This document shows, piece after piece, positions 12,577 through 26,134 of a DNA stretch of 64,000 nucleotides. The notes under the pieces were generated by a model. That model searched no databases. It was not told the DNA's origin and saw nothing but the letters and a program-made list of their open reading frames with translations. A program made the position numbers and the translations under genes. Every line of letters begins with the position of its first letter. The first letter of the stretch is position 1. Origin of the DNA: Macrostomum hystrix (taxonomy: Eukaryota > Animalia > Platyhelminthes); assembly GCA_950097015.1 (NCBI GenBank), contig CATNEN010000024.1, positions 434,001 to 498,000 of the forward strand, in the 5' to 3' direction.

Positions 12577-12671
12577 AGACTTATTGAAAATGCATATTTA
12601 GGACGCTTTCTTAGAAATACTTGTGCTAATTCAGACACTCGCTTTCCGACCTAAGCCATATAAGACAAATG

Positions 12672-13270
12672 TCATCTCGGACACACATGCCATCTCGGAC
12701 ACACATGCCATCTCGGACACACATGCCATCTCGGACACATGCCATCTCGGACACACATGTTATCTCGGACACACATGTTATCTCGGACACACATGCCATC
12801 TCGGACACACATGCCATCTCGGACACACATGTTATCTCGGACACACATGCCATCTCGGACACACATGTTATCTCGGACACACATGCCATCTCGGACACAC
12901 ATGTTATCTCGGACACACATGCCATCTCGGACACACATGCCATCTCGGACACACATGTTATCTCGGACACACATGCCATCTCGGACACACATGTTATCTC
13001 GGACACACATGCCATCTCGGACACACATGTTATCTCGGACACACATGTTATCTCGGACACACATGCCATCTCGGACACACATGTTATCTCGGACACACAT
13101 GTTATCTCGGACACACATGTTATCTCGGACACACATGTTATCTCGGACACATGCCATCTCGGACACACATGTTATCTCGGACACACATGTTATCTCGGAC
13201 ACACATGTTATCTCGGACACATGCCATCTCGGACACATGCCATCTCGGACACACATGTTATCTCGGACAC
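12672..13270. repeat. 18-bp minisatellite TCGGACACACATG(CC/TT)ATC
   Basis: Tandem copies, with occasional 16-bp deletion variants. Confidence 0.96.
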
Positions 13271-13929
13271 AAGTCGCACCAGATGTTACTTACACATTTC
13301 AGTTGTTATCGTTGTGTTGGCTGTGTAAAATGGCAGTGAAGCTGCTAGTAATGTTATCGAGGGTTAACCCGCAAAGCTAGCTAATGCTATTTCTCAGAGC
13401 TTCTCAATGCAGGTTGGGATCCGGATTAAACACAGCCATCAAGGCTCAACCTCCCAATAGTCCTTCTAAGCCAGCCAATGCCAAGGCTTGCAGTTGCTAT
13501 GCGGGTAGAACTAGATGGAAAGGATTGTTTTGTTGCTAACTAACGGGCCGTGACTGCTGCTGCTGCTGTTGCTGCTTTTTTAATATGTTTAGGTGGGGCA
13601 GGTCCAGCCCGGATGCCAGCGCAATGAAACAGTCAAGGATAGGTGGAGGGGTTGATGCGGGCTTGACAATGAATAAAATGCTATTTGATTTGCTTGCAAT
13701 CGGCTTGCTTATCATTTAATTATCAAACATTGAAACTCCGGCTTTGCAGTTTAAATTATTTTGAATAATTTGTAAGACTTCAACATTCAGCTGTGGAAAA
13801 TGTCTGTCCTAAATGGGCTCTCGTGACAAGTTAATTCAATTTTGTTTTCTCAAAAAACCTCTTTGAGCAGCTACAGTACGCAATATTGGGAGAATGGAAA
13901 GGTAGAAAAATGGAAGGATGGAAGGATCA

Positions 13930-15360
13930 CATATCTTCCGTGTCTCACATCTCCGGTGTCTCACCTCTCGCGTGTCTCACCTCTCGCGTGTCTCATCTCT
14001 CGCGTGTCTCACCTCTCCCGTATCTCATCCCTTCCGTGTCTCACCTCTCCCGTGTCTCACCTCTCCCGTATCTCATCTCTTCCGTGTCTCACATCTCCCG
14101 TGTCTCATCTCTCCCGTGTCTCATCTCTCGCGTGTCTCACCTCTCCCGTATCTCATCCCTTCCGTGTCTCACCTCTCCCGTGTCTCACCTCTCCCGTATC
14201 TCATCTCTTCCGTGTCTCACATCTCCCGTGTCTCATCTCTCCCGTGTCTCATCTCTCGCGTGTCTCACCTCTCCCGTATCTCATCTCTTCCGTGTCTCAC
14301 ATCTCCCGTGTCTCATCTCTCCCGTGTCTCACCTCTCCCGTATCTCATCCCTTCCGTGTCTCACCTCTCCCGTGTCTCACCTCTCCCGTATCTCATCTCT
14401 TCCGTGTCTCACATCTCCCGTGTCTCATCTCTCCCGTGTCTCACCTCTCCCGTATCTCATCCCTTCCGTTTCTCACATCTCCCGTGTCTCATCTCTCCCG
14501 TGTCTCATCTCTCGCGTGTCTCACCTCTCCCGTATCTCATCCCTTCCGTGTCTCACCTCTCCCGTGTCTCACCTCTCCCGTATCTCATCTCTTCCGTGTC
14601 TCACATCTCCGGTGTCTCACCTCTCGCGTGTCTCATCTCTCGCGTGTCTCATCTCTCCCGTATCTCATATATCCCGTGTCTCATCTCTCCCGTGTCTCAT
14701 CTCATCCGTATCTCATCTCTCCCGTATCTCATCCCTTCCGTGTCTCACCTCTCCCGTGTCTCACCTCTCCCGTATCTCATCTCTCCCGTATCTCATATCT
14801 CCCGTGTCTCATCTCTCCCGTGTCTCATCTCATCCGTATCTCATCTCTCCCGTATCTCATATCTCCCGTGTCTCATCTCTCCCGTATCTCATCTCATCCG
14901 TATCTCATCTCTCCCGTATCTCATATCTCCCGTGTCTCATCTCTCCCGTGTCTCATCTCATCCGTATCTCATCTCTCCCGTATCTCATCTCTCCCGAATC
15001 TCATCTCTCCCGTTTCTCATCTCATCCGTATCTCATATCTCCCGTATCTCATCTCTCCCGTATCTCATATCTCCCGTGTCTCATCTCTCCCGTGTCTCAT
15101 CTCTCCCGTGTCTCATCTCATCCGTATCTTATCTCATCCGTATCTCATCTCTCCCGAATCTCATCTCTCCCGAATCTCATCTCTCCCGTATCTCATCTCA
15201 TCCGTATCTCATCTCATCCGTATCTCATCTCTCCCGTATCTCATATCTCCCGTATCTCATCTCTCCCGTATCTCATATCTCCCGTGTCTCATCTCTCCCG
15301 TGTCTCATCTCATCCGTATCTCATCTCATCCGTATCTCATCTCTCCCGTATCTCATTTCT
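13930..15360 (+). repeat. 16-bp minisatellite TCTCATCTCTCCCG(T/A)(G/A), array 1
   Basis: Tandem copies; same family as 15897-16265, 17698-19768 and 57005-57580. Confidence 0.95.
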
Positions 15361-15896
15361 TTCATGTCCCATCGCTTCCCACTCTAACAGATAGTTTAGA
15401 CATAGACAGTTTTTGCAATTACATTTTTTTATTTTAAGTCGATAAACTGATAAACAGGTAGGCTGTCGAGCATGCAATTAGTGCGTGTACTTTTAGTAAT
15501 CGCAGCAGTCGAAAGTCCAACAGAACCAGTTGCAATTATATCAATCTGTTGTCACCATCCGTTAATTTTATTATTGTTTTGGATCCTTTACGAGCGTACG
15601 TTTCAGGTACAGTGGACATGTTAAAATAAAAATGTTGATGATACAATCTAGGGCAATGCGAACTTCTGAAGTCTTGCTTCACGCGGTCATACCGATGCTT
15701 TCGGCATAATTAATTTCTGAAGTTTAGTTGCTAATGCACCGGCACAGGCTCATTTCTCTTTAGCTGATCCATCTGGAATAGAAAATGCAATGTCTGAAAA
15801 TCGCATTCATGATATTACGGTTATTTGCAGGCATGATCATGTGGAATAGAGAAATATAACAGCCAAGGTATAACATCAGCATGAATAGGATGGACT

Positions 15897-16265
15897 GGGG
15901 AGAGATGAGACTCGGGAGAGATGAGACTCGGGAGAGATGAGACTCGGGAGAGATGAGACTCGGGAGAGATGAGACTCGGGAGAGATGAGACACGGGAGAG
16001 ATGAGACTCGGGAGAGATGAGACTCGGGAGAGATGAGACTCGGGAGAGATAAGACTCGGGAGAGATGAGACTCGGGAGAGATGAGACTAGGGAGAGATGA
16101 GACACGGGAGAGATGAGACTCGGGAGAGATGAGACACGGGAGAGATGAGACTCGGGAGAGATGAGACACGGGAGAGATGAGACTCGGAAGAGACGAGGCA
16201 CCGGAGAGACAAGGCACGGGAGAGACGAGGCATGGGAGAAACGAGGCACGGGAGAGACAAGGCAG
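15897..16265 (-). repeat. 16-bp minisatellite family, array 2 (inverted: GAGATGAGACTCGGGA on +)
   Basis: Reverse complement of arrays 1 and 3. Confidence 0.95.
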
Positions 16266-16292
16266 GGGAGCGATGACACGCGGCTTGCTCAC

Positions 16293-19200
16293 CCTATCCT
16301 TCAGCAGGAGCCGCAGCTGGTTGCTCATCGGCAGGAGTGCATCCAGCCTGGCAGCCGCGGCAGCCAGCTGTCGCAGGTCCTCGCAGAGTAGCATGCTGAG
16401 CAGCAGCTCGTGCTCATCGGCATCCTCCCTCAGCAGCACAGTCATCACCCAGGACTTGGCAGATGGGTCGTCGGGCAGGAGCAGAAGCCGCAGGCAGCTC
16501 AGCACTGCGTCGCAGTTGATAAAGTGGCAGCCATTGCTCAGCCGCAGGAAGCTCCAGTCTGCCAGCGGCTTCGGGAGAAACGGCAGCTGCGGTGGGCAGT
16601 CGAACTCCAGGCAAAACTTCCAGGCAGAGTCGCAGCTGTTGAGGTAGTTCCACACGACGGCCTCATCGACAGTGGCTTCAATGTCTGATTGCCAGTCAAG
16701 CCATTCGATGCCTCGACTGACCTCAAACGGCCTGCTGTAGGCCAAGATCTTCGCCGCTGACTGTCGGAATCCGAACTTCAAGCAGGCCATCGCTTTGAAT
16801 GTTTCTCGCGCAGTTCGGGCTGATTCCGGGAGCCGACTGAGCAGCTGGCTCAGCGAGCTCTGCGCCTCCGGTTGGCAGTCGCCTTCGCTGAGCTGGATGA
16901 CAGACTGCCGGACAACGTCAAGGATCTGGTGGAACACCAACTGACCCGAGGAAGGCACAGGACAATGTCCAAGGATCGGTAGCGTGACGAATGGGTGAAA
17001 GTAGAACCTGCCCGAGCTCTCTATGGGCCTTAGTTGCTTTTGAAACTGCTGCAGCAGCTTAGGCAGCTCGTCCAGTACGTCCTTCAGCACCTCAGCTACT
17101 TCTGCGGCGCAACCGCATTCGGCGCCTTTCAGGTACAGGCCTGCGTCCTCCAGGAAGAAGTGCTCCATGATGCGGCCCTCAGGACTCTCTGAGCTGCAGC
17201 ATTCAGCCATGATTTTTAGGGCTCGCCTTAACAGATCGATGAGGTTCTCCGCCCGCCACTGCTCAGTTGGTGTCTCCTCCAGCATGCGGAAGGTGACAGT
17301 CTTGGCATGGTAGGCCTTCAGGCCGCTGACACGGCGGCCGACCACCTTCTTCACCAGGTATTTGAGCGTGACGAACAGCTGGCCCTGCAGGCTGGTCAGG
17401 CTGCGCAGGAGCCGGTTCTCCAAGAAGGTGGTGCTCACCCGGAGCTGCCCGCCCGCTTGGCCCGGAGCCGCCGCGTGCACCACGTGGCAGGGGGTGTTCG
17501 CCAACTGCTGGCTCAACGCTTCGAGCACTGAGTCGCGGATGCAGGTGGCCCGATCTGGTTGCAATGGCCCAATGGATGGGTAGCAGCAGAGTCTGCAGGC
17601 GTAGACATGGTCGACGGCGGGTCGCGCGGCGGACCCGCGGGACGGGACAGCCGGGTTCGACGCTAAACAGATTGAATTAGAAGGCCTATAATTCACTCAT
17701 CTATCCCGTGTCTCATCTCTCCCTGTCTATTCTCTCCCATGTCTCACCTCTCCCGTGTCTCATCTCTCTCGTGTCTCATCTCTCACGTGTCTCATCTCTC
17801 GCGTGTCTCACCTCTCCCGAATCTCATCCCTTCCGTGTCTCATCTCTCTCATGTCTTATCTCTCCCGTGTCTCATCTGTCCCCTGTCTCATCTCTCCCAT
17901 GTCTCACCTCTCCCGTGTCTCATCTCTCTCGTGTCTCATCTCTCCCGTGTCTCATCTCTCTCATGTCTCATCTCTCCCGTGTCTCATCTGTCCCCTGTCT
18001 CATCTCTCCCTGTCTCATCTCTCCCATGTCTCACCTCTCCCGTGTCTCATCTCTCTCGTGTCTCATCTCTCCCTGTCTCATCTCTCCCATGTCTCACCTC
18101 TCCCGTGTCTCATCTCTCTCGTGTCTCATCTCTCCCGTGTCTCATCTCTCCCTGTCTCATCTCTCCCGTGTCTCATCTGTCCCCTGTCTCATCTCTCCCT
18201 GTCTCATCTCTCCCATGTCTCACCTCTCCCGTGTCTCATCTCTCCCGTGTCTCATCTGTCCCCTGTCTCATCTCTCCCGTATCTCATCTCTCCCGTGTCT
18301 CATCTCTCCCGAGTCTCATCTCTCGCGTGTCTCATCTCTCCCATGTCTCACCTCTCCCGTGTCTCATCTGTCCCCTGTCTCATCTCTCCCGTATCTCATC
18401 TCTCCCATGTCTCATCTCTCTCGTGTCTCACCTCTCCCTGTCTCATCTCTCCCGTGTCTCATCTCTCCCATGTCTCATCTCTCCCGTGTCTAATCTCTCT
18501 CGTGTCTCATCTCTCCCGTGTCTCATCTCTCCCGTGTCTCATCTCTCCCATGTCTCACCTCTCCCGTGTCTCATCTCTCTCGTGTCTCATCTCTCCCGTG
18601 TCTCATCTCTCCCTGTCTCATCTCTCCCATGTCTCACCTCTCCCGTGTCTCATCTCTCTCATGTCTCATCTCTCCCGTGTCTCATCTGTCCCTGTCTCAT
18701 CTCTCCCGTATCTCATCTCTCCCGTGTCTCATCTCTCCCTGTCTCATCTCTCCCATGTCTCACCTCTCCCGTGTCTCATCTCTCTCGTGTCTCATCTCTC
18801 CCTGTCTCATCTCTCCCTGTCTCATCTCTCCCATGTCTCACCTCTCCCGTGTCTCATCTCTCTTGTGTCTCATCTCTCCCGTGTCTCATCTCTCCCATGT
18901 CTCACCTCTCCCGTGTCTCATCTCTCTCGTGTCTCACCTCTCCCGTGTCTCATCTCTCTCGTGTCTCACCTCTCCCGTGTCTCATCTGTCCCCTGTCTCA
19001 TCTCTCCCGTGTCTCATCTGTCCCCTGTCTCATCTCTCTCTGTCTCATCTCTCCCATGTCTCACCTCTCCCGTGTCTCATCTCTCTCGTGTCTCATCTCT
19101 CCCTGTCTCATCTCTCCCTGTCTCATCTCTCCCATTTCTCACCTCTCCCGTGTCTCATCTGTCCCCTGTCTCATCTCTCCCTGTCTCATCTCTCCCATGT

Positions 19201-20295
19201 CTCACCTCTCCCGTGTCTCATCTCTCTCGTGTCTCACCTCTCCCGTGTCTCATCTCTCTCATGTCTCATCTCTCCCTTGTCTCATCTGTCCCCTGTCTCA
19301 TCTCTCCCTGTCTCATCTCTCCCATGTCTCACCTCTCCCGTGTCTCATCTCTCTCGTGTCTCATCTCTCCCTGTCTCATCTCTCCCTGTCTCATCTCTCC
19401 CATGTCTCACCTCTCCCGTGTCTCATCTGTCCCCTGTCTCATCTCTCCCATGGTTCATCTCTCCCATGTCTCACTTCTCCCGTGTCTCATCTCTCTCGTG
19501 TCTCATCTCTCCCGTGTCTCATCTGTCCCCTGTCTCATCTCTCCCTGTCTCATCTCTCCCATGTCTCATCTCTCCCGTATCTCATCTCTCCCGTGTCTCA
19601 ACTCTCCCGTATCTCATCTCTCCCGTGTCTCATCTCTCCCGAGTCTCATCTCTCCCGAATCTCATCTCTCCCGTGTCTCATCTCTCCCGTGTCTCATCTC
19701 TCCCGAGTCTCATCTCTCCCGAATCTCATCTCTCCCGTGTCTCATCTCTCCCGAATCTCATCTCTCCCTATAATTCATATTCTGATGAATTCGTGTAAAA
19801 ATCTTGAATGCTCCACGCCCTGACTACACGAGCTGATAATATCACATTAAAGGAAATAGATTAGCGGAGTTCTCGGAAATATATGCGCTCAGATTTTTGC
19901 AGACAATAAAATGACAAGCCGACTCACTGAAGCCAGAAACCACAATGTGACCATTCACATATGCCACCAAGTCCTCCCGTTTCACCGAGCCGCAGCGGCA
20001 GTGTTCCTCCAGGTGATACAGCCGGCCCTGGATTAGGCGCATCATGTCGATGTCGGACTCAAAGTCCGTCCTGCCGTCCAGCTGGCTGAGACTGTTGCCC
20101 CAACCCTCCGAGTAGCTGCCCACGATGAACGACGAGCTGCCGCGGCCGAGTCGCTGATCCAGAATCCGCTGCAGGACGTCGCCCACAGCGCTTTGCAATG
20201 CGGCTCTGGCGCGGACGAAGCCGGCCCGCCGGAGTGCCTCGTGCAGCCGCAGGCTGAGCTGGCACTCACTCGCGGCGCCTGAGTCGGCTGAGAAT
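16293..20295 (-). CDS. Mab-21/cGAS-like nucleotidyltransferase (cGLR); 5' and 3' ends uncertain
   Basis: Exon 19928-20295 has GSYSEG..ESDIDMM. A phase-1 intron (GTGAGT at 19927, TTTAG at 17663) joins it to exon 16293-17662, which has VDHVYAC, CHVVH, LRVSTTFLENRLL, LKYLVKK, LKAYHAKT and HFF, the conserved Mab-21 motifs in order, followed by a helical C-terminal extension ending at a GTGAGC donor. Confidence 0.88.
17698..19768 (+). repeat. 16-bp minisatellite family, array 3 (with 15-bp variants)
   Basis: Fills the intron between the two cGLR exons. Confidence 0.96.
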
Positions 20296-20743
20296 CTGCG
20301 AAGTTCAAGTATGATGCTTGACGTTTCGCTTGATTCGGTTCAGAATTCAGACTTTTTGGTGCCGAAAATTCTCACGAATGTAATCTTTTTATTGTGGTGT
20401 ATTGAATTGTCACAGGCCTGACTTTCGGGTTACAACTGGGTAACGACCTCGGGGGTATTTCAAATACCCACTGAGAGACACAGATACAGAAAATGGAGGA
20501 GATATGTAGAAATATAGGAGATACAGAAAAAATGTAATAACTTTAAGTACCCCATGGTATTTCTACTGTTAAAGGCTGAGTATGATGAGCAAGTGAGGGC
20601 GAATGTACTCAGTTTTTAATGCTCTGAATTAAAAGCACAGGACTTGTTTCTCGGCCGCGGCAAAACGGAGGCCTGGAAGCGAGTCCGAGGCTTTTAATTT
20701 AGGCCATAGACTAAAATGAAGAGAAGAAATATTTTATACCCAA

Positions 20744-20749
20744 TTTATT
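20744..20749 (-). promoter_or_regulatory. Candidate AATAAA poly(A) signal after the ankyrin ORF
   Basis: TTTATT on +, about 120 nt downstream of the stop at 20869, followed by T-rich sequence on the minus strand. Confidence 0.45.
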
Positions 20750-20868
20750 GCCATACTAAAATGGCACAAGTCCGTGCAGCAATCATAATGTCTATGGTAA
20801 AACATCATTGAATTCCACAACCTGTGCCATTGACCTGAATGCTCTTTGGTATCGATAATCAGAATAGC

Positions 20869-22608
20869 TCACATGCCCAATGTGGATTCCTCAGCCTCCG
20901 TATCAGGGTTAGCTTCTGTTTCGCCAGACGAAGCAATTTCTCTGAACAGGCTGACCACCTGGCGGTGCCCGTTCAGTTCAGCAACCTCGGAAGGCGAGAC
21001 TCCATCGCGATTCCTAATGCTAGGATCGGCTTCCGCCTGCAGCAACAGCCGCACAACGGCCTCGTGACCATTCTGAGCGGCTATGAAAATCGGCGTGCAG
21101 CCGGACAGTTCCGGCAGATCCACGTCAGCCCCGGCTCTGATCAGGGATCGCACGATCTGGTAGCGCCCCAGCTGCGCCGCAATGTACAGCGGCGCACCGC
21201 CCTGACTGTCTTGCAGGTTCACATCGGCACTGGCGTTAATAAGTAGATCTACAATGCGACTGTGGCCATCCTGGGATGCGATGAACAGGGGAGTATTGCC
21301 GCTGATAGTCTGGGCGTTCACATCAGCCTGGGCCTTCGTTAGCAGGGCCACAACCCGGTCGTGCCCGTTTTGGCTAGCAATGTACAGGGCCGTGCAGCCA
21401 CGATCGTTCCGCAGGTCGATGTCCGCCTGAGCTCTAACTAGCGCATCGATGATCACCAAATGGCCAAACTGGGCAGCCGTGTACAGCGCTGGCTCACCCG
21501 AGTCTCTTTGAAGGTTGACGTCCGCCTGGGCATTGATAAGAAGCTGCGCGACTGTCCGGTGCCCATTCTGAGCGGCGCTGTAGAGAGCGGACTCGCCAGT
21601 GCTGCGCTGAGCGTCAACCTCAGCCTGAGACGCTACGAGAAGCTTCACGACGCGTTCGTGATTGTTCTGCGCCGCAACGTACAGCGGCGAAGAGCCGGAG
21701 TTCCTAAAGAGGTCAACACGAGCCTTGGCCTCAATAAGAATCCTAGCTACTTCTTCATGCCCGTTCTGTGCCGCTATGTACAGTGGCGAGCAGCCATCAG
21801 CCTCCTGTAGATTGACATCTGCCTGGGCCGCGATAAGCGACCTAACAATGCCTGGGAAGTTATTTTGCGATGCCACGAAAAGAGGGGAGAAGCCGTCCGT
21901 TGTCTGCAAATCGACGTCGGCTCCGGCCCTGATGAGCGCTGCGACAACAGCACAGTGTCCGTTCTGAGCCGCAATGTACAGCGGAGTGCAGCCATCCGTT
22001 TCTCGAAGGTTCAAATCCGCACAGGCCTGCATCAGGGACTGGGCCGCCTTGGTGTGGCCGTTCTGTGCGGCGATGTACAGCGGCGTGACGCCATTGCTCA
22101 ACTGGTGGTTGACGTCGGCGCCGGCCGCAGCCAGTAGGCCGACGACTTCACCGTGACCGTTCCTTGACGCACAATGGATTGGCGACTCTCCCGTGTTGGC
22201 CTGCACATTCACCTCCGCCTTGGCTCTGAGCAGCTGCTCAACTACCTTAATATGGCCATTCTGTGACGCAATGTAGAGAGGGGTAGCGCCTAATCTTTGC
22301 CTGAATGTTAAATCGGCCTGTGCCCTGACTAGCAGCTCCACTGCTTGATGGTTGCCCTTCTGTGCTGCGATGTACAGTGGAGAGCAGCCATTGAATTGGA
22401 GTATGTTGACGTCGGATTGGCCGAGCAGAAATTTTCGCAGAGGCCTCAGCAACTCAAACTCCGAAGCTAAGTGAAGCGGAGTGGTCTCAATGCTGGAGTG
22501 GATTTTCAGCCACCTCTCGCCGTCTGTCTCGGCATCGACGAGGTTGGAAAGCTTGGCCAGGTCGTTCTTCGCAATGGCCACAAGGTACTCAAACTCTTGA
22601 GACTGCAT
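20869..22608 (-). CDS. Ankyrin-repeat protein, about 16 repeats, single coding exon (possibly the N-terminus of the cGLR)
   Basis: 579-aa ORF with recurring 33-aa (T/S)PLYIAAQNGHxxVVxxLLxAxADVN units; ATG preceded by an acceptor-like TCTCTTAG. Confidence 0.93.
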   Translation of the reverse strand: MQSQEFEYLVAIAKNDLAKLSNLVDAETDGERWLKIHSSIETTPLHLASEFELLRPLRKFLLGQSDVNILQFNGCSPLYIAAQKGNHQAVELLVRAQADLTFRQRLGATPLYIASQNGHIKVVEQLLRAKAEVNVQANTGESPIHCASRNGHGEVVGLLAAAGADVNHQLSNGVTPLYIAAQNGHTKAAQSLMQACADLNLRETDGCTPLYIAAQNGHCAVVAALIRAGADVDLQTTDGFSPLFVASQNNFPGIVRSLIAAQADVNLQEADGCSPLYIAAQNGHEEVARILIEAKARVDLFRNSGSSPLYVAAQNNHERVVKLLVASQAEVDAQRSTGESALYSAAQNGHRTVAQLLINAQADVNLQRDSGEPALYTAAQFGHLVIIDALVRAQADIDLRNDRGCTALYIASQNGHDRVVALLTKAQADVNAQTISGNTPLFIASQDGHSRIVDLLINASADVNLQDSQGGAPLYIAAQLGRYQIVRSLIRAGADVDLPELSGCTPIFIAAQNGHEAVVRLLLQAEADPSIRNRDGVSPSEVAELNGHRQVVSLFREIASSGETEANPDTEAEESTLGM

Positions 22609-22994
22609 GGTAGTCGTCTCTACTAAGAGACTTACAGATTATGTTTTCAGGCCCTCGTTAGCTTTGCAATCTTATAAAAAGCTTAGCTGTATTGGGAGGG
22701 AGGTCTAGAAAGGATAGCACACTGTTGGTACCTTATTCTGTATGATTGTAGTGTGAAAGAATAACTCACGCTGTGTTTCAGAAATCCATGATAATGTACA
22801 TTATTTATAAGCTAAAAATAATGCCTTATGATATTGTGGACTGGTTTCGACGCCCAACCTACAATTGTGCAAAGGAATTTAGTCTGACATGACTCACGCA
22901 CATTCAGTACAAAGTCTACACAGAAGTAGAAGTGTACTCTAGGACGTTCTCAAACGCCTACATTTTAACAGAGTTGCAATGCACTTGCTTTGCA

Positions 22995-24058
22995 GTGTAT
23001 GTCAGGGAATGTGAATTTGAGGGTATGCGAAGTTTTACAAATGTGAAGTTTGGGTAATGTGAAGCTTGGGTAATGTGAAGTTTGGGTAATGTGAAGTTTG
23101 AGTAATATGAAGTTTTGGTAATGTGAAGTTTGGGTAATGTGAAGTAAGGGTAATGTGAATTTTAGGTAATGTGAAGTTTGTGGAATGTGAAGTTTGGGTA
23201 ATGTGAAGTTTGGGTAATGTGAAGTTAGGGTAATGTGAAGTTTGAGTAATGTAAAGTTTGGGTAATGTGAAGTTTGGGTAATGTGAATTTTGTGGAATGT
23301 CAAGTTTGGGTAATGTGAAGTTTGGGTAATGTAAAGTTTGGGTAATGTGAATTTTGGGTAATGTGAAGTTTGGGTAATGTGAAGTTTGTGGAATTTGAAG
23401 TTTGGGTAATGTGAAGTTTGGGTAATGTGAAATTTGTGGAATGTGAAGTTTGGGTAATGTGAAGTTTGGGTAATTTGAAGTTTGGGTAATGTGAAGTTTG
23501 GGTAGTGTGAAGTTTGGGTAATGTGAAGTTAGGGTAATGTGAAGTTTGAGTAATATGAAGTTTGGGTAATGTGAAGTTTGTGGAATGTGAAGTTTGGGTA
23601 ATGTGAAGTTTGGGTAATGTGAAGTTTGGGTAATGTGAAGTTAGGGTAATGTGAAGTTTGAGTAATATGAAGTTTGGGTAATGTGAAGTTTGGGTAATGT
23701 GAAGTTTGAGTAATATGAAGTTTGGGTAATGTGAAGTTTGGGTAATGTGAAGTTTGGGTAATGTGAAGTTAGGGTAATGTGAAGTTTGGGTAATGTGAAG
23801 TTTGGGTAATGTGAAGTTTGGGTAATGTGAAGTTTGGGTAATGTGAAGTTTGGGTAATGTGAATTTTGTGGAATGTGAAGTTTGGGTAATGTGAAGTTTG
23901 GGTAATGTGAAGTTTGGGTAATGTGAAGTTTGGGTAATGTGAATTTTGTGGAATGTGAAGTTTGGGTAATGTGAAGTTTAGGTAATGTGAAGTTTGGGTA
24001 ATGTGAAGTTTGGGTAATGTGAAGGTTGGGTAATGTGAAGTTTGGGTAATGTGAAGTT
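22995..24058. repeat. 16-bp minisatellite TAATGTGAAGTTTGGG
   Basis: Continuous tandem array. Confidence 0.97.
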
Positions 24059-24166
24059 TTAAGGTGAATAAAATACATAAACGTATTTTATGGTGTCCAC
24101 GGTCTCAGACATTGAGAAAATATGTATTCATAAAAAATGGCCAACAAAATAAATAAGTTTATCCGG

Positions 24167-24685: not shown

Positions 24686-24829
24686 GATTGGCACTAACAG
24701 TAGCCTGGGCTTGCCTTTGCAAATAAAAAAATAAATATACTAACGTATTTTCGCTTTTTTAGAACAGCTTTGGGCCATAGACTACCGGACCATCAGTTCA
24801 GAAAGATAATTCTAAAGTGCTTCGTGTTT

Positions 24830-25598
24830 AACAGATCAGTCTCGTGTCTGACAGATCAGTCTCGTGTCTGACAGATCAGTCTCGTGTCTGACAGATCAGT
24901 CTCGTGTCTGACAGATCAGTGCGCCGTGTCTGACAGATCAGTGCGCCGTGTTTGACAGATCAGTCTCGTGTCTGACAGATCAGTCTCGTGTCTGACAGAT
25001 CAGTCTCGTGTTTGACAGATCAGTGCGTCGTGTCTGACAGATCAGTCTCGTGTCTGACAGATCAGTCTCGTGTCTGACAGATCAGTCTCGTGTTTGACAG
25101 ATCAGTGCGTCGTGTCTGACAGATCAGTCTCGTGTCTGACAGATCAGTCTCGTGTCTGACAGATCAGTCTCGTGTCTGACAGATCAGTCTCGTGTCTGAC
25201 AGATCAGTCTCGTGTCTGACAGATCAGTCTCGTGTCTGACAGATCAGTCTCGTGTCTGACAGATCAGTCTCGTGTCTGACAGATCAGTGCGTCGTGTCTG
25301 ACAGATCAGTCTCGTGTCTGATAGATCAGTCTCGTGTCTGACAGATCAGTCTCGTGTCTGACAGATCAGTCTGGTGTCTGACAGATCAGTCTCGTGTCTG
25401 ACAGATCAGTCTCGTGTCTGACAGATCAGTCTCGTGTCTGACAGATCAGTCTCGTGTCTGACAGATCAGTCTCGCGTCTGACAGATCAGTCTCGTGTCCG
25501 ACAGATCAGTGCGCCGTGTTTGACAGATCAGTCTCGTGTCTGACAGATCAGTCTCGTGTCTGACAGATCAGTCTCGTGTCTGATAGATCAGTCTCGTG
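24830..25598. repeat. 20-bp minisatellite CAGATCAGTCTCGTGTCTGA
   Basis: Continuous tandem array. Confidence 0.97.
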
Positions 25599-26134
25599 TA
25601 TTTATATCATAGCATAGTTTAGCATCCTATATACTAAAAATGAATATATTACTGAAAGCAGTGAGTGATTGTTCGACTAGTTTATAAAAAATAAAGATGA
25701 AGTGTTGTTATACTGTTTGTTGTGCTGCGAAGGTAGCTAGGATGGTAAATTATTTTGTAATGCATTAGGTTCGAAAAATATATTTAGTGCACTGTTTTCA
25801 AAGTAAATAACTGATTGGGATTGCTAAAAAAACTATAAAAATGACTTACGTAGCTCGTAGCCTATAATTAATTATAAAGATTAAGCAAACAGGAAGCAAA
25901 AAATGAGAGAAGGAAACTAGTGCAATAGTGTGAATTCATGTCAAGTGAATGTCACACTCAGATTTGTATAAAACATGAGAAAATTGTACGACTGTTTTGT
26001 AAACATAGATAAAAAAGCATATCAACGTGAAAATTGAAAATGCGCCGAACAGTTTACTTAAACACTCTTGGATTGGGAAGGAAAGCCAGAGGCAAATATG
26101 GACAAAATGATGGGACAGAATACGAGTGCAAGAA

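Follow-up and report, generated by a model that had tools for sequence, protein, structure and literature searches.

The 64,000-nucleotide (nt) stretch of the Macrostomum hystrix genome that was analysed here (contig CATNEN010000024.1, positions 434,001 to 498,000; hereafter the window) raises the question of whether a long ankyrin open reading frame (ORF) and a neighboring start-less exon of a cGAS-like receptor (cGLR) are parts of a single gene, and whether their joining is subject to a switch. An earlier note on this DNA, made from the letters alone (the original prediction), had proposed an ankyrin-cGLR fusion that is switched between splicing through an intron and polyadenylation within it, the latter yielding an ankyrin-only decoy or regulator. 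All gene coordinates given below are on the minus strand and refer to positions within the window. Our analysis indicates that the locus is very probably one minus-strand gene with three spliced exons whose protein product, at least 1,158 residues in length, consists of 16 ankyrin (ANK) repeats, a flexible acidic linker, a cGLR nucleotidyltransferase (NTase) and a C-terminal extension. The fusion part of the proposal therefore stands, as RNA and the layout of the Macrostomum lignano relatives both place the ankyrin ORF as exon 1 of one gene, and the polyadenylation part finds no support.

The gene structure can be read directly from the splice sites and frames. The ankyrin ORF comprises 579 codons from an ATG at 22608 and terminates with ...ACA TTG GGC ATG TGA. 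The G of this terminal ATG and the T of the TGA are the GT of a GTGAGC donor, with the exon ending at 20873 in phase 2. The 'ankyrin ORF' is thus exon 1 (coding part 20873-22608), and its apparent stop is a TGA that arises from reading into the phase-2 donor. The intron that follows (intron 1, 20296-20872, 577 nt, GTGAGC...TTCGCAG) has its acceptor ending at 20296, which puts the first base of exon 2 at 20295, likewise in phase 2; two other candidate AG acceptors, at 20318-20317 and 20330-20329, are in phase 2 as well. The frame of exon 2 (19928-20295) is closed upstream by an in-frame TGA at 20342-20340 and contains no Met ahead of the GSYSEG motif, the first in-frame Met coming after the D-I-D motif. 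Exon 2 ends in phase 1 at an A/GTGAGT donor after 19928, and the frame resumes behind TTTAG at 17662, which is the first position of exon 3 (16293-17662, with AGG/GTGAGC as its putative 3' boundary). Intron 2 (17663-19927), which separates these two exons, is 2.26 kb in length and is nearly all 16-nt satellite, with the array called by Tandem Repeats Finder at 17696-19768. Joining of the three exons gives a spliced frame of 1736 + 368 + 1370 nt = 3,474 nt, or 1,158 codons that are free of stops, with the peptide ..STLG-I-FSADSGAASEC.. at the exon 1-2 junction. Regarding the 5' end, we take 22608 as the start codon because RNA contigs extend beyond it, to 22655 in run X3 and to 22664 in run X2, without any joint and because an in-frame TAA at 22641-22639 precedes this ATG. 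The 5' untranslated region thereby covers at least 22609-22664.

Evidence that these exons are joined in RNA comes from four public runs of one study (X1-X4), in which 70-72% of the sampled words of 19900-22650 are present, and whose assembled contigs were placed on 19775-23030. A single joint is observed in all four runs. It connects 20295 to 20873, skips 577 nt, and has CT..AC ends on the plus strand, which is GT..AG on the coding strand. Exon 1 has contig coverage in each of the runs. One 3,603-nt contig of X1 spans 22627-20873 and 20295-19928 before extending into exon 3, and in X3 a 2,577-nt contig likewise bridges exon 1 to exon 2 and enters exon 3. Splicing of exon 2 to exon 3 is also confirmed, as each run has a 30-nt contig overhang at 19928 whose reverse complement matches the sequence that begins at 17662. 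Two segments of intron 1, 20320-20428 and 20647-20864, have no coverage in any of the four runs. The signal that is present at 20429-20646 consists of short contigs (63-104 nt, depth 53-95x) matching over approximately 20 nt, plus one X4 contig (20481-20646, 166 nt, depth 2.5). The approximately 20-nt matches are located at 20450-20473 and 20558-20576 on opposite strands. Because only this short segment matches, we read the short contigs as coming from elsewhere, probably from a small repeat that is common to an abundant transcript. In these samples the three exons are apparently spliced constitutively. Re-reading of the coordinates, phases and motifs bore out every sequence feature that the original prediction had listed as seen, among them the stop of the ankyrin ORF within a phase-2 GTGAGC donor and a cGLR 5' exon that has an upstream in-frame TGA and no Met before the catalytic motif. 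Its predicted 577-nt intron proved right to the base, and its frame of at least 1,158 codons encoding about 16 ankyrin repeats, an NTase and a tail agrees with the open frame, the 15 repeat motifs plus cap and the Mab-21_C match described below.

The contigs also differ from the genome at single bases, located at 20132, 20157, 21400, 21537-21574, 21740, 21783 and 21933, and A>C at 21740 is common to the four runs. The simplest explanation is that strains or alleles differ at these sites. At 22456, in the ankyrin exon, one X4 contig (depth 9) is one base short, as would be caused by a frameshifting allele or an assembly error, while the other three runs match the genome at this position.

The same architecture is found in a family of proteins from M. 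lignano. When exon 3 is used as a query, the named matches are all from this species, with 53% identity over the full length and 71-73% on partial entries; no identical protein is present in the searched databases. An exhaustive HMMER search yielded 140 relatives, many of which are 1,100-1,600 residues in length with the match beginning after residue 600. All eight long homologues that were tested have N-terminal ANK arrays and align to the exon 3 query, and six of the eight also match Pfam Mab-21_C. Ten relatives that were looked up are all from M. lignano, eight being GenBank hypothetical proteins and two being UniRef-only entries. One of the relatives, PAA61028.1 (P0017, 'hypothetical protein BOX15_Mlig021960g2', 1,146 residues), is collinear with all three window exons at 39-56% identity and shares with the window gene the ANK repeats and, as judged from its structural model, the disordered linker and the cGLR domain. 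The P0017 gene (L001) likewise consists of three exons, and its two introns match those of the window gene in both position and phase, 2 and 1 (intron 1, GA/GTGCGT ... TTCAG/A; intron 2, TTT G/GTAATT ... GGCAG/CG). In the gene for a second relative, P0023, the ANK exon is likewise followed by an intron in phase 2, which has the donor TC/GTAAGT. The fused architecture and the intron layout are therefore older than the split between these proteins, whose identity today is 40-50%. Layout and intron phases are conserved in M. lignano proteins that are paralogues or orthologues of the window gene. There are also differences. The P0017 introns are approximately 240 nt and without satellite arrays, whereas those of the window are 577 nt and 2.26 kb with the latter satellite-filled, and P0017 has its stop codon within exon 3, whereas the window frame is open past the corresponding point. 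Overall, the RNA contigs of four runs, the 1,158 open codons and the equivalent layout of all eight long homologues place the ANK repeats and the cGLR domain on one polypeptide from one mRNA.

Turning to the encoded domains, exon 1 codes for a tandem array of 15 ANK core motifs at an exact 33-residue spacing, followed by a capping repeat and the acidic linker, with Pfam matches to Ank_2 (1.3e-141) and Ank (2.4e-104). The ANK array, the linker and the C-terminal extension are acidic, and the cGLR core is mildly basic (isoelectric point 8.6). An AlphaFold model of full-length P0017 (predicted local distance difference test score, pLDDT, 90.7; predicted template modelling score, pTM, 0.58) has two confident domains with a disordered linker at 529-548 and no confident docking between the ANK and cGLR parts. 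The mutual arrangement of the two parts is not predicted, and gating of the NTase by the ANK array is neither supported nor contradicted by this model.

The cGLR part is divided between the other two exons. Exon 2 codes for the N-terminal spine helix and the first catalytic strands with the GS and D-I-D residues (55-60% identity to M. lignano homologues), and exon 3 codes for the third catalytic Asp (PAVDHV), the Mab-21_C helical lobe and a C-terminal extension of approximately 230 residues (50-53% identity to M. lignano proteins). Exon 3 matches Pfam Mab-21_C at 2.6e-6 with 27.9 bits, the curated cutoff being 24.1. A single-sequence search of the PDB with the cGLR part of P0017 gave only noise, such that a family profile was required. 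A profile of 31 family sequences matched 'cGAS-like receptor 1' (8gjy) at 2e-5 and many cGAS chains at approximately 1e-4, and matched MAB21L1 at only 0.15. The AlphaFold model of P0001, the homologue with the closest near-complete cGLR part, has a mean pLDDT of 90 and a pTM of 0.91, and exhibits the bilobal cGAS/Mab-21 NTase fold, with its best Foldseek matches in the PDB being cGAS ternary complexes and oyster Cv-cGLR1 (probability 1.0, template modelling score by target approximately 0.55). The active-site signature G[GS] ... [DE]h[DE] ... [DE] is present in the window as VGSYSEG, ESDIDMM and PAVDHV. In the 29 rows of the family alignment the G is conserved in 29, the S in 28, the first D in 29, the second D in 28 (with one E) and the third D in 27, and in the P0001 model these residues are located at the end of strand 1, at the start of strand 2 and on a later strand, respectively. 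GS and D-x-D are separated by 19 residues, a longer spacer than that of cGAS.

The C-terminal extension that follows the Mab-21_C lobe is confidently folded in the model and aligns with molluscan Mab-21-like proteins in the AlphaFold database (K1PS26, K1PQ41 and Mytilus entries). A feature search with this extension in a protein atlas gave only sub-threshold leads to Mab-21_C clusters (0.83). The possibility that the extension is a new domain is rejected given that the fold search of the AlphaFold database shows it to be common to molluscan Mab-21-like proteins, and it is a feature of the spiralian Mab-21-like family. A separate observation is that His and Cys residues in an insertion between the catalytic strands are nearly invariant (H92, G113, H114 and C146 in P0001 numbering), with the window counterparts being '..HLEEHCRCG..NGH..' in exon 2 and '..CRLCCYP..' in exon 3. 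By analogy these residues could form a metal site, comparable to the zinc thumb of cGAS but at a different location.

Several points weigh against reading the locus as a single gene for an ANK-cGLR receptor. The library type of the four runs is recorded only as guessed RNA; the zero coverage of intron 1 argues for their being RNA. The evidence taken from them consists of assembled contigs of low depth (approximately 6-13x), which show presence and not absence and from which rare variants are dropped. The structural tests were made on homologues, namely P0001 (53-60% identical to the window exons) and P0017, and not on the window's own spliced protein. In addition, observations on the 3' end of the gene and on its stop codon conflict with each other. 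The frame of exon 3 is open past AGG/GTGAGC (16293) into an inverted satellite copy, up to a TGA at 15876, and the ends of the homologues fall a few residues at most from the point corresponding to 16293. Past exon 2, the X1 contig runs on for 1,480 nt and the X3 contig for 1,479 nt, and their ends lie approximately 110 nt beyond 16293 and near the onset of repeating 31-mers (16187), which suggests read-through into the satellite. A run search with 16186-16292 (five sampled words), on the other hand, listed no RNA run, which suggests that the GTGAGC donor at 16292 is used. A candidate short terminal exon at 15760-15894 has a CCCCAG acceptor in phase 0 and 44 codons followed by a TAA, as read from the sequence and without homology support. 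Finally, five M. lignano constructs (#89-93) were part of the 140-protein screen of Li et al., 2023 (PMC9980059), and none of the five carries the note that is given to active enzymes in the screen table.

The last of these points bears on the alternative that the fusion is real but is not a signaling cGLR, with a Mab-21 domain that is inactive or has another role as has been proposed for developmental MAB21L proteins. The GS to D-x-D spacer that is longer than in cGAS is also in keeping with this alternative, which we nevertheless consider unlikely. The active-site residues are nearly invariant over a large and diverged paralogue family, which argues for selection on catalysis, and the family profile is nearer to cGLR1 and cGAS than to MAB21L1. 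By Li et al.'s own account most of the screened cGLRs are inactive without their ligand, and the silence of constructs #89-93 is uninformative because they were tested without a ligand or the ANK domain.

The proposed switch would pit the donor at 20873 against intronic polyadenylation at an AATAAA (20744-20749), such that the locus produces both the full ANK-cGLR protein and an ankyrin-only decoy or regulator that ends ..STLGM. This AATAAA is located 124 nt downstream of the donor, read-through into intron 1 would stop immediately at the TGA, and a minor ankyrin-only isoform is compatible with the contig data. We nonetheless regard the switch as very improbable. None of the four runs has coverage at 20647-20864 or a contig that continues from 20873 into intron 1, and no transcript that passes the donor and ends at an intronic poly(A) site was found among the contigs; furthermore, the X1 and X3 contigs cross the 20295/20873 junction unbranched. 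The AATAAA is itself at chance level, as at least one occurs in 29% of shuffles of intron 1 (P ~0.29), and this intron (577 nt, 40% GC) contains two AATAAA and two ATTAAA, that is, three hexamers besides the proposed one. The stop in the donor, which was offered as an argument for an ankyrin-only product, is automatic because any phase-2 intron with a GTRAG donor reads xxG TRA, which is TGA or TAA. It is also not conserved, being a TAA in P0023 and absent from P0017, where read-through of the GTGCGT donor gives no immediate stop in contrast to the immediate TGA in the window. The switch would have been the novel part of this locus, and it is unsupported.

Highly improbable, too, is that the ankyrin and cGLR segments are two neighboring genes, with the cGLR having its own promoter or first exon and the contigs representing occasional read-through into conjoined transcripts. 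The low-depth X4 contig in intron 1 could be taken in its favor. However, exon 2 has no start codon before its active site and has the in-frame TGA upstream, no contig starts or ends at 20295 except via the joint with no overhang reported there, and M. lignano genes show the same fused layout and intron phase. We reject separate genes on the strength of the RNA joint, the missing start codon and the conserved layout. There is barely any likelihood that the locus is an operon which is split by spliced-leader trans-splicing at the 20296 acceptor into one mRNA for the ankyrin part and another for the cGLR. In M. lignano the spliced leader does end in an ATG (PMC8629364), but when joined to 20295 this reads ATG ATT CTC..., which is out of frame with a stop after approximately 10 codons. 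This ATG is out of frame at each of the three candidate acceptors, all of which are in phase 2, and none of the four runs has an overhang resembling a spliced leader at 20295; we likewise reject rescue of the cGLR exon by a spliced leader. A hidden 5' exon within the 577-nt intron is dismissed given that ATG-initiated ORFs in it are all 31 codons or less and have no supporting RNA, although phase-2 donors that could join such ORFs to 20295 were not examined.

For the single three-exon ANK-cGLR gene, we infer enzyme activity, a ligand and a role for the ANK repeats. Once activated, the NTase would make a nucleotide second messenger, and the ANK array would be a ligand- or partner-binding or regulatory module, as Li et al., 2023 proposed generally for ANK-cGLR fusions. 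A more specific and quite speculative idea, which we think is doubtful, is that the ANK solenoid rather than a nucleic-acid-binding surface is the sensor. Its target might be a protein of a pathogen or of the host, or it might keep the NTase inactive until it is engaged. A minor ANK-only product, arising by read-through or polyadenylation in intron 1, could then tune the receptor, and a protein-sensing class of cGLRs would then have expanded in macrostomid flatworms. If true, this would explain why the M. lignano constructs that lack ANK are silent in vitro.

ANK-cGLR is one of the recurrent cGLR domain architectures described by Li et al., 2023 (PMC9980059), whose Table S2 shows Ank_2 domains in several M. 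lignano PAA proteins. The window gene shares with these fusions the ANK repeats and the cGLR NTase core, belongs to the same flatworm family (45-73% identity to the M. lignano members), and has in common with them the catalytic motif context GS[FY].[ED].WG...D.D. It differs in being a distinct copy, with a best identity of 53% over the full exon 3 and 71-73% on partial entries, and in having its splice structure shown directly by RNA. The five M. lignano constructs of Li et al., 2023 (PMC9980059) have sequences that start with the NTase part, and no function was reported for the ANK part. The same study describes 'most' platyhelminths as lacking immune cGLRs, and M. lignano does not appear in the accessible part of its cGLR/STING count table (PMC9980059). 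A full-text literature search found no later paper on ANK-cGLR function.

More distant comparisons are with vertebrate cGAS and oyster Cv-cGLR1 (PDB 4k97, 8gjw and 8gjy), which share the bilobal Mab-21 NTase fold, the GS / acidic-x-acidic / acidic layout and the Mab-21_C helix bundle with the window family at only about 15% identity. In contrast to these proteins, the window gene codes for a 560-residue ANK solenoid in place of an unstructured basic N-terminus and its family has a longer loop between GS and D-x-D than cGAS. The approximately 230-residue C-terminal extension has no counterpart in cGAS and is common to the window protein and the molluscan Mab-21-like proteins. Cnidarian fusions (Li et al., 2023, Fig. 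4C) also place a sensor-type repeat domain on a cGLR within a lineage-specific cGLR expansion, but they belong to a different lineage and the cnidarian and flatworm fusions may have independent origins.

The fusion type was thus already catalogued in 2023, and this locus adds a member and no new principle. What it does change is annotation, as a stand-alone long 'ankyrin ORF' beside a start-less cGLR exon is one gene, which corrects the annotation of macrostomid loci of this kind. None of the catalogued ANK-cGLR receptors has a known ligand, product or role for its ANK repeats. With most flatworm lineages reported to have lost immune cGLRs, Macrostomum provides an accessible laboratory model for addressing what ANK-cGLR fusions sense.

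Two additional observations concern the M. lignano relatives. P0016, which is 1,346 residues in length, contains two complete cGLR units in tandem, and is either a multi-cGLR fusion such as those of Li et al. or a merged gene model of tandem paralogues. Directly upstream of the P0023 gene and on the opposite strand is another ANK-repeat gene (L002 1-10; 745-residue product), an arrangement that points to local clusters of ANK-family genes in this species.

The remaining observations concern satellites, related units of which are present around and within the gene, at 13930-15360, 15889-16257 and 17696-19768, and also at 23040-24059, 12665-13271 and 24822-25599. The 16-nt array downstream of exon 3 (15889-16257) is inverted relative to the array in intron 2, such that exon 3 is flanked by inverted arrays of one satellite (15893-16280 versus 17720-19768) with arms of approximately 290 nt that are 83-93% complementary. 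Pairing of these arrays in the pre-mRNA could place exon 3 in a loop, and such a geometry is known to favor exon skipping or back-splicing. Satellite-filled introns such as intron 2 break gene models in macrostomid genomes. Furthermore, satellites with 16-20-nt units are free of stops in all three frames of one strand, and the spurious ORFs that result, 400-700 codons in length, are a possible source of error for gene finders.

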